This document shows positions 54,449-60,126 of a stretch of 64,000 nt of DNA, in pieces. Source of the stretch: Fonticula alba ATCC 38817 (Eukaryota > Protista > Nucleariida); NCBI GenBank assembly GCA_000388065.2, contig KB932206.1. One strand, given 5' to 3'. Position numbers and translations under genes: made by a program. How positions within the stretch are numbered: the stretch's first letter is position 1; every line of letters starts with the position of its first letter. Below the pieces are notes generated by a model, which was not told the DNA's origin, did not search any database, and saw nothing but the letters and a program-made list of their open reading frames with translations.

Positions 54449-54844
54449 GGTGGATGTCCCGGGGCTGTGTAGGGCGAGCGAGGCGGGGAAGACAGAACGG
54501 GGGAAGCTGCGAGCGGGGCCAGGTTGGTGTGGCACAGGCGGGAGGATGCCAACACCGGGGCCGGCTTTTAAACACCCACCACGAGGGCACGACGCCAACC
54601 GGGGCGGGAGAGGGGGGCGGGGCCTGACCGGGGCCGTGGTCTAGCGAACCCTCCAGAGAGGGGACCTCCAGACCAGCCGAGTTAGGCGACCTCCCCTGAT
54701 CGGAGTCCCCATTCGAGCCCCTGGTTAGGGCGAGGGGAGGGCGAACCGCGCGGCATTTGTGCCTGACACACGCAAACCACCCTGGCCGCTAGCTCGCTTG
54801 TTGGGAGGAGGCGTGCGCCTGAAAGCCACCGCGACGGCAGCATT

Positions 54845-54853
54845 CAGAGACAG

Positions 54854-54893
<40 letters not shown>

Positions 54894-54925
54894 AGAGAGA
54901 GAGAGAGAGAGAGCGAGAGCGAGCG
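54845..54925 (+). repeat. (GA)n microsatellite
   Basis: Directly visible. Confidence 0.9.
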
Positions 54926-55782
54926 AAAGTCCGAGGATACCCGATGGGCAGGGAGGGGTTGAAAGGGAGAGGGGAAGAAAGACATGCGCACACTCAGGGC
55001 CAAGGCGTAAAAAAAAAAGGATGCAAGCGAGTGGAGGGGCAAACTCCTGGCCGGGTGGAACAACACAGGGAGCATACACGCCCCTGACACACTCCCGCCC
55101 CTCCGACCCATGGTTTCCCGATTCACCTACGCCCCGCGAGCGGGCACCTATATTCCGATTTCGGGGGAGCGCCATCCGGCGCGCTCAAGGGGCTCGAACA
55201 CTTGGCTCACACTTAAAAATGACCCCGCGCCCCGGCGCCAGGGCGACCCGGCTTCCCTGGTGGCTTCCTTCGGACGCCCTTCTGTGCCGAAAGACACACG
55301 GCAGGTGCAGGTGGGCGGGGGGGGGGGGGGGGGCGAGGAGCCCGGGACCCCCCCACGGCAGCCGGACAATCCACACACGCTCAATTCTCACGCCCCCTTC
55401 GCTCGGGCGCTGGGAAATAGCGGAGAGAGCCGCGCCGCCCGCCCTCCCCCCCCCCCCCCCATGTCGGGTGGTGCAACCACGACCAAGTGCCAATGCCCGG
55501 GAGAAGCCAACCCAGCTCCCGGAGGGCATCCCCTCGCGCCGCTCGCCCGCCTGCCGCTCCGGCTCCTGGCCCCGCTGGTGGTCCCCTTCAGCTCGGCCGC
55601 GGGCCACGCACAGCAAGAGCGCGCGCGACTCATTACCATGCTGGCTTCTGCTTCTTTTTTTATTTTTCACTCGCGTACATCAAATATCCGGAAACGCAGG
55701 GGCCGCAGCCAACAAACACCCGCCATGGGGACCGGGCATCGGCCGCGCCAGGCCTCCCACGGTACCCCGGGGCTGCTGCCTT

Positions 55783-58700
55783 TCAGCCAAATAGCAGTGC
55801 CAAGAGCAGCTCCCGCCCGGGGCCACTTCCCTCCAGCAGGGCCGCCGTCGCTGGGAAGCGCTCCAGGAAGGCCTCCACGGCCGCGTAGCCGACGGCCAGG
55901 CGCACCAGCGGCTGACCGGCCTCCGGGAAGTCGATATCCAGCCCGCGCAAGAGGGGCGACGAGGAGGTCGGCACATGGAAGTGCCGCAACACATGGCGCT
56001 CCTCACTGATATACAGCCGACACCGGTCGCAGGCTGGGCAATCTTGCCCGGGTTCCAACAAGTGCCGGCAAAAGTGCCCGGCTGCCAGGGCAACGACGGA
56101 TGGCAAACGGGCGGAGGGGGAGAAAGGGAAGAGGGGCGAATGCGTCGAAGGTCAGAGGGGTTGGGGGGGGGGAGAGAAAAAGGCACGGCATGCTCGCGGG
56201 GCCCCGGGACAGGGCTGGCGATTGCGTACCAGCCACCGGCTGCCGGCACAGGTAGCAGCTCTTGGTCCCGCAGATGGGGCAGGTCATCTCGTTGCAGCCC
56301 TGCTCCTTGACGAAGGGGCTCTGACATCGAGGGCATGTTCGAATCAGGGTCGCCGAGAAGATGCTCTCAACGAACAGGCGCAGCTGGTCCAGGGACCCGG
56401 CATCCGGCCGGGCCGGCGGGTGGCGAAGATCCACCGAGCCGCCGGCCGCCGGCGAGGCAGACGCCGAGGCCATCTCGGCCGCCGCGGCTGCCGCGACCAC
56501 CTGCGCCGCCAAGGTCCCGGCCGAGCGGCAGGGCAGCCCGCCATGCGCCGGCTCCCCGCAACCGGCACATGTGGCCGCCAGGCAGTGAATATTCCGGCAG
56601 ATAAAGGGCTCGCTGCCGGAAGAGCCGCGCGTGGGGAACCCGGCGAAGTCCCCGGCCCGTGGAGCTGGCCCGATGTCTCGCGCCACCAGCTGCCGAACGG
56701 CCACATCGATGCGCCTGGCCGGCAGGAAGGTCAGATCGACCAGCGGCTGGCTGAAGCCCAGAAGCAGCAAAATGCCGGACCCCAGCCGGGCCCCATGGTG
56801 CGCGGCCGCCAGGAGCCCGGCACCGGGCGGCGGCGCGGGCCCAGTGATGCGACCTGGCGAGGGGGGTTGGCCACGGCGCCCGGCGTCGAGGGAATGATGG
56901 TCAAGGCTGTCAGATGGGAGGGACGGGGTTGGGGGGGGGAGAGGGAGGAAGAACGCGAAAGGGGCCGCCAGTGGCATCCAACCGGGAAGGGGGCAGGGGC
57001 AGCGGCGACAATGTGACAAGCACACGCACCGTCCAGGAGGAAGACCACCGGCGCCACAAGCAAGACCGCCCAGAAGAGGAGAGACCGCGAATCATTGGTC
57101 AGCAGCAGCCCGAGCAGCAGCAGGACCGGCATGCTCGCAGCCAGCAGCAGGATCAGCCGGCCGAGCAGGGCGCGATACACCACCAAACGCTCAAAGTGCC
57201 CCGGTGGCCAGGCGGCGCTCGGGTTGGCCGGAGGTGAGACGCCCACCATGGCCCGCCAGCGGTCGCGCCAGGACTGATACTCCAAACGGAATTCGGCCGG
57301 CTGGGCCTCGGGATCCGGGCCCAGTGGCCCCGGCCCCGGGTCCGACACTTCCTCAAAGTAGCCGCACAGGCCGCACGCCCGGGTGGCGGGCAGAACCCCG
57401 GACAGAGCGCGCGCCATGAACCGCTGGCCCTCATCCGGGGCCAGGCACCGGCCAATGACATCCTCCAGACGGATCTGGCCACTGGCGCATGGGGGCTCGG
57501 CCGTGGCGGCAAAGCATCCCAATGCCAGAGGCCCATTGCCCGGTGGCCGGTCCAGGGCCAGCCCGGCAGCCGATCGCACACAGGACACACACAAAGCATG
57601 CTGGCTTGGCCCGGTGCAGCGGACCACCTCCCCGGCCGGGAAGTCCCCGAAGCAGCACTGGCACTCGGCCGGCGGCCCGACGGGGGCCGCCCCGGCCGCG
57701 GCGGCCTCGGCCTCGGCCGTCGCCCGGGCCGCCGCCTTCCAGCCGTGCAGCTTCAGCACATCCAGCACGAGATCCGGGTCGAAGTAGCGTGCTGGCCGCG
57801 GGGCGGCCGGACCGCCGGGCGCACTTCGGAGCAGGCTACGCAAGCCCCACCATGTCAGTCGCCGGAAGCCGGTCGGCATGGGAGCCGGGCCACCGGCGAT
57901 CACCTCCAGCGCTGGCCGCCGCTGTGTCGAGTTGAAGAGAGACATGAACTTCTCGGCAAACCGATGCGACCCGGTGGTCACCGTATTGGTCAGGTGAATG
58001 AATGCCAGGCCATAATCCCCCTGGAAGCTGGTCAGTGCATGGCTGACGGGGGGGGGGAGGCGACGAAGGGAATGTCAGAAGGCGAGCCCCAGTTGACAGG
58101 GCCGAACGAGAGGGAGGCAGGCGATGGAGAGCAGAGACGGAGAGAGGGAGAGAGAGAGAGAAAGAGGGGCGGGGAGGGGGTGGACACGGGAGGGAAGGGG
58201 GGACACGCACCCGATTGAGCTGCCCATGAGGAAGGGGAACTCCAAGGCCAGGAGCTCGTGTGCCTGGCTCAGGTACTCGGCCGTTCGGAAGCGCAGGGTC
58301 GACGCCACGGTGAATGCCTCATCCAGGCAATGGACCCCCCCGCCGAGGCAGGGCGCCACATCGATCAGATGCCCGGGTGGGGGCAGCGCGCACAGGTGCG
58401 ATGGTGGGGGGGACCCCGGGGTGGGGCCGGCGCCGGTCGGAGGCCTGGCCGCGCGACAGGCAGCCAACAGGTCCAATGGCGGCCGCAAGGCCAGCAGCCG
58501 GTGATGCCGGTGCTCGGTGAGGGCCACATCGACAATGGACAGGCGCGCCCCCGGGGCCGGACCGGCCAGGAACCCGGGCAGCCCGGGCCGCGGGAGCCAT
58601 TGAGCCTGGGCCCGGAAGGGGCCGCCCTCGGCACCGGCTGCAGCCGCGGCCGCCTGGCGCTCGACAAAATCCCCCAGCAGACGACGAAGCTCACGACCAA

Positions 58701-59679: not shown

Positions 59680-60126
59680 GATGCCTGGCTTGGCAGGAGT
59701 GGAGAGGGGGAAGGAGAGAGGGGGAGAAGGGGAGAAGGGGAGAAGGAGGGGGGGAGAGAGAAAGCGGGGATCCGGCGGGGGGGGGCCGGAAGCGGGCTGG
59801 GTGGGGGGGAGAGAGGGATAGGAAGAGAGAGGGAGAGAGAGAGAGAGGAAGGCAGAGGAAAAAGCGGGGCAGCAGATTCAGAGGCGATTGGCGAGGACCG
59901 AAGGGCTGGGTGCAGCGGCCCCTGGCTCATTTGAAGATCCTTCCCTCCGCGTCTCCGCGCGCCGAGCCGGCAGGCAGTCGAGTCGAGGGGACGCATCATC
60001 TGCAGGGGAAAACTGANNNNNNNNNNGCTCATTTGAAGATCCTTCCCTCCGCGTCTCCGCGCGCCGAGCCGGCAGGCAGTCGAGTCGAGGGGACGCATCA
60101 TCTGCAGGGGAAAACTGATCGCCCCG

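Follow-up and report, generated by a model that had tools for sequence, protein, structure and literature searches.

Can the IBR domain of a RING-between-RING (RBR) ubiquitin ligase take up a long hydrophobic insertion within one of its zinc sites, and what might such an insertion do? The question is raised by H696_03785, a gene of the nucleariid Fonticula alba that lies in the 64,000-nucleotide stretch of contig KB932206.1 analysed here (the window). RBR ligases such as parkin, HOIP and RNF216 (Gordon Holmes syndrome) have been studied intensively, and their IBR is usually viewed as a compact, rigid spacer that binds allosteric ubiquitin. In the H696_03785 product, some 180 extra residues are looped out between the second and third IBR zinc ligands, and we consider it rather probable that this insert is a membrane hairpin that projects from the IBR and anchors an RNF216-type ligase to a membrane.

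H696_03785 is a minus-strand coding sequence (59679-55783) with a 1,134-residue product (P0001), titled 'hypothetical protein H696_03785 [Fonticula alba]' at NCBI. From the sequence and its translations, the minus-strand exons run from 59679-58211, 58042-57030, 56853-56230 and 56081-55783 (including the stop codon), and the introns, all GT..AG, occupy 58210-58043, 57029-56854 and 56229-56082. A phmmer search with exon 2 against 1.84 billion representative sequences recovered P0001, which is 100% identical to our exon-by-exon translations and was used as the joined protein; its exon junctions read ..VVFLLD-G-RITGP.. (intron 57029-56854) and ..CRQPVA-A-GHFC... An earlier reading of the locus made from the sequence alone had proposed an intron at 57030-56854 that restores the frame. 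The splice agrees with P0001, with the start moved to 57029 and a length of 176 nt. At E<=0.001, the gene is present in a single copy in the F. alba assembly (31.3 Mb, 214 contigs) and is the only RNF216/TRIAD3-type gene of the genome.

The zinc ligands of a complete RBR module can be followed through P0001. RING1 (Cys617-Cys675, ECQCC..C..H..C..C..C..C; 57487-57663, minus strand) matches residues 3-69 of the RNF216 structure 7m4m (E = 2e-3), has ligand columns that are invariant in the homologue alignments, is modelled by AlphaFold2 (AF2) with a predicted local distance difference test score (pLDDT) of about 90 and resembles the RING1 folds of parkin and HOIL-1 (Z-scores of 7-8). By sequence and alignment, the IBR begins with ligands C1 and C2 in CGLC (Cys713 and Cys716; 57364-57375, minus strand), followed by GYFEEVSDP, and resumes in its second part with F-I-C913 x4 C918 x4 C923 x2 C926 x4 H931 x4 C936 (56528-56605, minus strand), giving the complete C6HC set of C713, C716, C913, C918, C923, C926, H931 and C936. 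Both parts had been located correctly from sequence alone, CGLC to within one base (approximately 57376-57365) and the second part at approximately 56605-56525. The exon 3 stretch GFPTRGSSGSEPFICRNIHCLAATCAGC..H..C aligns to the second half of the RNF216 IBR, in a weaker stretch of the 7m4m match. RING2/Rcat spans C1001-C1030 and continues through an extra zinc motif to Cys1056 (56017-56335, minus strand, split by intron 56229-56082), with the catalytic Cys1014 in GCNEMTC at 56296-56294. The zinc motif that follows RING2 in RNF216 (PMC7458406) is kept in P0001 as HFC1040..C1050..C1053..C1056, and no ligand of RING1, IBR or RING2 has been lost.

These features point to the RNF216 family, as had been proposed from the sequence. 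RNF216 is the best solved relative of the protein both by sequence and by fold: the best solved match of exon 3 is human RNF216 (7m4m, E = 1.5e-8 over RING2), and PF26200, named Rcat_RNF216 in the Atlas table, is among the precomputed Pfam hits of P0001, with Pfam IBR and IBR_1 matched in the RING2/Rcat region. RING1, a C6HC IBR and an Rcat with the extra zinc motif are all present, and the compact IBR of the solved and basidiomycete members (about 14-17 residues between C2 and C3) is absent, as it also is from the ascomycete-type members. Human RNF216 also has an N-terminal CUE/UBA pair, which in P0001 is faintly detectable as a CUE match below the Pfam cut-off (E = 0.24); PF26112 (UBA_RNF216) is on record for relatives and not for P0001. 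Judged by sequence, H696_03785 is an RNF216/TRIAD3-type RBR ubiquitin ligase, a type that in RNF216 makes Lys63 (K63)-specific ubiquitin chains and is activated by K63 di-ubiquitin (PMC7458406, PMC9834252). We also observed that the linker from IBR to RING2 (residues 937-1000; 56336-56527, minus strand) is enlarged, with 76 residues from the end of the IBR to GCN compared with 35-43 in 119 relatives, and is about 40 residues longer than in human RNF216. The extra linker sequence is Ala/Ser-rich and of low complexity (AAQVVAAAAAAEMASASASPAAGG), and AF2 still gives a helix preceding RING2 despite it.

The insert itself comprises residues 717-912 (56600-57363, minus strand, interrupted by intron 57029-56854). 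It places 196 residues between Cys716 and Cys913, the C2 and C3 ligands; human RNF216 has 14 at this point, and 118 basidiomycete homologues have 15-17. This upholds an IBR split by an insert of about 190 residues, as first read, and revises the spacing of about 10 residues then given for RNF216. To describe its hydrophobicity we used a Kyte-Doolittle (KD) scan with a 19-residue window and an approximate Hessa free energy of membrane insertion (dGapp). Helix 1, LILLLAASMPVLLLLGLLL (residues 786-804; 57100-57156, minus strand), is a 19-residue run without any polar residue, with a KD of 2.8 and a dGapp of about -3. Helix 2, SLLFWAVLLVAPVVFLL (residues 810-826; 57034-57084, minus strand), reaches a KD of 2.1-2.2, with approximate Hessa values of +1.8 to +5.9 for the overlapping 19-mers around it. 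The stretch ILLLLGFSQPLVDLTFLPA (residues 855-873; 56717-56773, minus strand) is weaker (KD 1.61, dGapp +7) and is probably an amphipathic helix. All three had been quoted as hydrophobic in the sequence-only reading; the sequences stand as quoted, and the first two are of transmembrane (TM) grade, unlike the third. TNDSR joins helices 1 and 2, and Arg-containing stretches flank the pair, an arrangement that would suit a hairpin whose two ends face the same side of a membrane. Segments with a KD above 1.6 occur in the 1,134 residues of P0001 only within residues 776-873, with none after RING2, and 118 of 120 basidiomycete homologues have no such segment at all, which argues that the hydrophobicity of the insert is more than chance. 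Pfam found no domain in the insert, and the phmmer search with exon 2, which covers the first 111 insert residues, returned only the sequence itself and two weak RING1 matches.

The codon usage of the insert is like that of the flanking exons and unlike that of the introns. RING1, CGLC and both hydrophobic helices lie on one uninterrupted exon (exon 2), and through the insert the annotated frames have a GC content of 0.82-0.84 at third codon positions (GC3) and 0.36-0.62 at second positions (GC2). We trained a codon log-odds model on the conserved parts of H696_03785 (a set in which exon 3 runs 8 bases into its intron, with negligible effect). In the annotated frame, the insert scored at exon level, with +0.41 bits per codon for its exon 2 part, +0.40 for its exon 3 part and +0.70 for the two helices by themselves (training windows 0.44 +/- 0.12, held-out exon 4 +0.59); the insert segments scored -0.3 to -0.7 bits per codon in the other two frames, and the three introns scored -0.27 to +0.05.

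A hydrophobic insert in the same loop recurs in fungal relatives, where the sequence-only reading had suggested looking for it. The best hits of the C-terminal half of the Fonticula protein are Z518_08235 of the ascomycete Rhinocladiella mackenziei (P0004) and a JGI protein (P0005). Each has 78 residues between C2 and C3 and a hydrophobic stretch of 39-40 residues (KD 2.6-3.0) that is its only hydrophobic segment, and the two inserts are homologous to one another (E = 2e-5). Alignments A1 and A6 place the Fonticula, P0004 and P0005 inserts in the same loop with flanks that agree on both sides (CGLC-GYFEEVSDP and CPFC-SYAEVDP; SEPFIC-RN and SQRFSC-RN). When metagenomes were scanned with the ascomycete IBR as seed, 40 loci emerged (L002-L035 and L041 being ascomycete-type), of which 32 were analysed; since the pattern derives from sequences that carry the insert, these counts are uninformative on the share of ascomycetes without the insert. 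In 32 of 32, CPFC to RING2 is one contiguous open reading frame (ORF; 34-76% identity), and the insert in this clade therefore cannot be a splicing artefact. Their C2-C3 spacing is 76-93 residues, the hydrophobic run measures 29-53 residues with a best KD of 2.0-3.3, Arg/Lys-rich flanks surround it, and the zinc ligands are kept together with the insert down to 34% identity. P0005 also has a structural match (TM-score 0.75) in an Atlas cluster of 51 members labelled Ascomycota; the match covers 233 of 241 residues and takes in the insert. The hydrophobic IBR-loop insert is thus a conserved trait of an ascomycete-type RNF216 clade. In these inserts we noted a central proline-rich kink, (I/L)P(F/L)LLP, within the hydrophobic run, as a candidate hairpin-turn signal, and directly before C3 an exit motif that is strongly basic, R-[RK]-R-R-x-G-L-[KR]-F-x-C, as a candidate positive-inside signal.

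The basidiomycete RNF216-like proteins, among them those of Exidia glandulosa (P0003) and Psilocybe (P0014), share the RBR core at 30-34% identity but keep the compact IBR, and in them (P0003, P0006-P0124) HFDQ..KC.LWD replaces the HFC..C..C..C.LY that follows RING2. The post-RING2 Cys ligands are kept in the Fonticula, ascomycete-type and human proteins, and the basidiomycete homologues, being derived, say little about the ancestral state. Alignments that included many basidiomycete rows (A2, A3 and A5) had the Fonticula CGLC misplaced by MAFFT.

In AF2 models of both types, a helix-turn-helix lies between IBR strands that are formed on either side of the insert. The P0005 model (residues 319-639, from the 57-row alignment A4; mean pLDDT 75.5) has two IBR strands ahead of the insert (113-115 and 122-124), two more behind it (195-197 and 206-208) and insert helices at 144-171 and 173-190, with a block pLDDT of 73-90 over 141-190 (70 for 181-190); its best match in the PDB is 8eb0, a transthiolation complex of RNF216 (Foldseek E = 7e-11). 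The Fonticula model (residues 608-1075, from alignment A6, which consists of three insert-bearing rows and C-terminal fragments of basidiomycete homologues; mean pLDDT 70.5) also has 8eb0 as its top match (Z-score 8.6, 183 residues aligned). Its insert is flanked by strands at model positions 103-105 and 112-114 on one side (pLDDT about 60) and 303-305 and 314-316 on the other (76-81), and within the insert helix 1 spans model positions 165-197 (residues 772-804, pLDDT 83-86), helix 2 spans 201-223 (residues 808-830, pLDDT 74-79) and further helices occupy 233-253 and 255-280 (pLDDT 61-74). On the AlphaFold check that the sequence-only reading had called for, the models give strands on both sides of the insert, with a pLDDT of only about 60 around CGLC. 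P0005 is modelled with its hydrophobic run as a single long helix, after which comes an amphipathic helix. A proline-kinked monotopic hairpin is the more likely membrane form of the ascomycete-type protein; that of Fonticula would come nearer to the classical hairpin of two helices.

How could an IBR work around such an insert? We propose that the core of the insert, the two uniformly hydrophobic helices (approximately 786-804 and 810-826) with a polar turn of 5-6 residues, would dip into the membrane and return to the cytosolic side from which it entered. IBR ligands are used sequentially, with C1-C4 forming site I and C5, C6, H and C8 forming site II, as in the parkin IBR. Given this order, the insert would replace the tip of a hairpin within site I, and the two IBR halves could still close around the first zinc ion just above the bilayer. 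RING1, which binds the ubiquitin-conjugating enzyme (E2), the RING1-IBR helix and RING2 with Cys1014 would stay cytosolic at the membrane surface, free for binding of the ubiquitin-charged E2 (E2~Ub) and for transthiolation. For the cell, we infer that this exact isoform would be translated, targeted to a membrane and inserted there in this topology, and would retain its ligase activity. In RNF216, the allosteric ubiquitin pairs with a beta-strand of the IBR (PMC9834252). As allosteric ubiquitin binds the IBR, the anchor may place the allosteric site beside the membrane; we speculate that the hairpin might hold that site at the bilayer and so couple activation of the ligase to ubiquitin chains on membrane proteins.

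Several observations weigh against the membrane hairpin. The genome is 65-70% GC and the helices are CTG-rich, and the codon score is in part a product of leucine codon bias; a donor at 57280 (GGA followed by GTATCAGT) and an acceptor at 56613 could define a cryptic intron that keeps the frame; low-complexity expansion is frequent in P0001; the pLDDT near CGLC is only about 60, and AF2 takes no account of membranes; and between the Fonticula and ascomycete inserts there is no significant similarity (BLASTP against the P0005 insert, E = 0.56). The cryptic intron, a GT..AG pair that would leave a 35-residue loop, opens the way to an annotation artefact in which most of the insert is spliced out to give a near-canonical IBR. 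We regard this as quite improbable: such an intron would measure 667 nt, compared with 148-176 nt for the three H696_03785 introns, its donor is unlike the GTGCGT/GTACGC used in the gene, the sequence upstream of 56613 has no CTGAC-like branch site, and exon-grade codon usage in the annotated frames would be excised with it; in ascomycete-type homologues the insert lies in an uninterrupted ORF. The other in-frame splice pairs, which we enumerated, appear unlikely.

Were the insert translated without serving as an anchor, it could be a low-complexity expansion, specific to this lineage and driven by GC and CTG, in a surface loop that tolerates it, and it might then act as a hydrophobic helical bundle or an oligomerization module or be near-neutral baggage. 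The composition of P0001 (14% Ala, 14% Leu, 10% Pro and 10% Gly) fits this, as do the further Ala-rich expansion in the IBR-RING2 linker, the orphan status of the insert sequence and the packing of five helices together by AF2. Yet the polar-free 19-residue run at 786-804, with its KD of 2.8, is unexpected in a soluble helix, and 34 independent fungal sequences have a conserved hydrophobic run with basic flanks in the same loop, which speaks for selection acting on hydrophobicity there; an insert that is not an anchor is in our view unlikely. We are still more doubtful of a broken IBR, in which zinc site I is blocked and the protein is a degenerate or non-catalytic RBR or has RING1 and RING2 uncoupled. 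An insertion of about 180 residues inside an IBR zinc site has no known precedent, and the first IBR half is modelled at a pLDDT of about 60; against this, the eight IBR ligands, those of RING1 and RING2 and the catalytic Cys are all kept in what is the sole RNF216-type gene of the genome, and the ascomycete-type clade retains the ligands alongside its insert at identities down to 34%.

Whether the membrane hairpins proposed for Fonticula and for the ascomycete-type proteins share an origin was approached with a hidden Markov model (HMM) of the 34 fungal inserts. It scored -0.7 bits on the Fonticula insert, no better than shuffled sequences, with 153 of 500 global and 266 of 500 windowed shuffles equalling or beating that score. 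Both inserts have the same site and similar flanks, and a short basic/aromatic motif aligns in A6 (QSWRDR in Fonticula, SWRLKR in the ascomycete-type proteins); these points are no more than suggestive of common origin. Whether by common origin or by convergence, the presence of a hydrophobic insert in the same C2-C3 loop of ascomycete-type homologues makes the architecture a recurrent one. A bolder and distinctly tentative scenario is an old membrane-bound RNF216 branch in Holomycota (Fonticula and Ascomycota), defined by an IBR hairpin that holds the allosteric site at the bilayer and lost, or never gained, in Basidiomycota.

Set beside known systems, the Fonticula protein shares with human RNF216/TRIAD3 (7m4m, 8eb0) the ECxCC of RING1, the F-x-C-x-N-x-x-C..C..C..H..C of the second IBR half, GCNxM(S/T)C and CYLCR in RING2 and the HFC..C..C..C thereafter, but the human protein is soluble, with none of the two TM-grade helices found among the 196 residues of the Fonticula loop. 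With the ascomycete-type homologues it has in common a hydrophobic insert in the identical C2-C3 loop, the flank C-x2-C-[GS]-Y-[AF]-E, a basic/aromatic juxta-membrane stretch and HFC..C..C..C; their insert is 76-93 residues long with one proline-kinked run of 29-53 residues, whereas that of Fonticula has two helices of about 20 residues, a polar turn and further helices. RNF19A/B and RNF217 are membrane RBR ligases with TM segments after RING2. As in our reading of the Fonticula protein, the RBR module of RNF144A/B is tethered to the membrane by hydrophobic helices; Fonticula differs in having no hydrophobic segment after RING2, an anchor inside the IBR and membership of the RNF216 family, its best PDB relatives being RNF216 and not RNF144. 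RNF144A/B carry their TM segments C-terminally (PMC7458406), in line with the placement after RING2 that the sequence-only reading had given for membrane RBR ligases.

That reading had gone on to propose a new way of anchoring an RBR ligase. The literature that we searched, with subscription journals outside its coverage, describes neither a TM segment or hairpin inside an IBR nor fungal RNF216 homologues, and the split IBR with its predicted membrane helices sets the Fonticula protein apart from every described RNF216 member. The architecture is real and undescribed there, but it is not unique, as a shorter insert is standard in ascomycete-type homologues; 'new' here means undescribed in the searched literature and not absent from databases. 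If the membrane hairpin is correct, the IBR tolerates a large topological insertion, with a membrane hairpin threaded through its first zinc site, and RBR ligases, which otherwise reach the membrane by C-terminal TM helices or through partners that recruit them, would have a third route. For genome annotation, RNF216 orthologues bound to membranes probably stand behind the title 'hypothetical protein' of H696_03785 and behind many fungal entries named 'RING-type domain-containing proteins', and orthologues in culturable ascomycetes would offer a tractable fungal system for RNF216-type K63 ligases at membranes.

Around the gene, a gap in the assembly (consecutive N, translated as XXXX) lies at approximately 59900-60100, about 250 bp upstream of the H696_03785 start codon. 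The same sequence of about 30 codons (..SFPLQMMRPLDSTACRLGARRRGGKDLQMS..) borders the gap on both sides, which looks like a scaffolding artefact with duplicated gap edges. Downstream of the gene, a long (CT)n/(GA)n microsatellite at approximately 54780-54990 gives reading frames of SLSLSL.. or RERERE.., and the introns of H696_03785 are also filled with CT-rich tracts.

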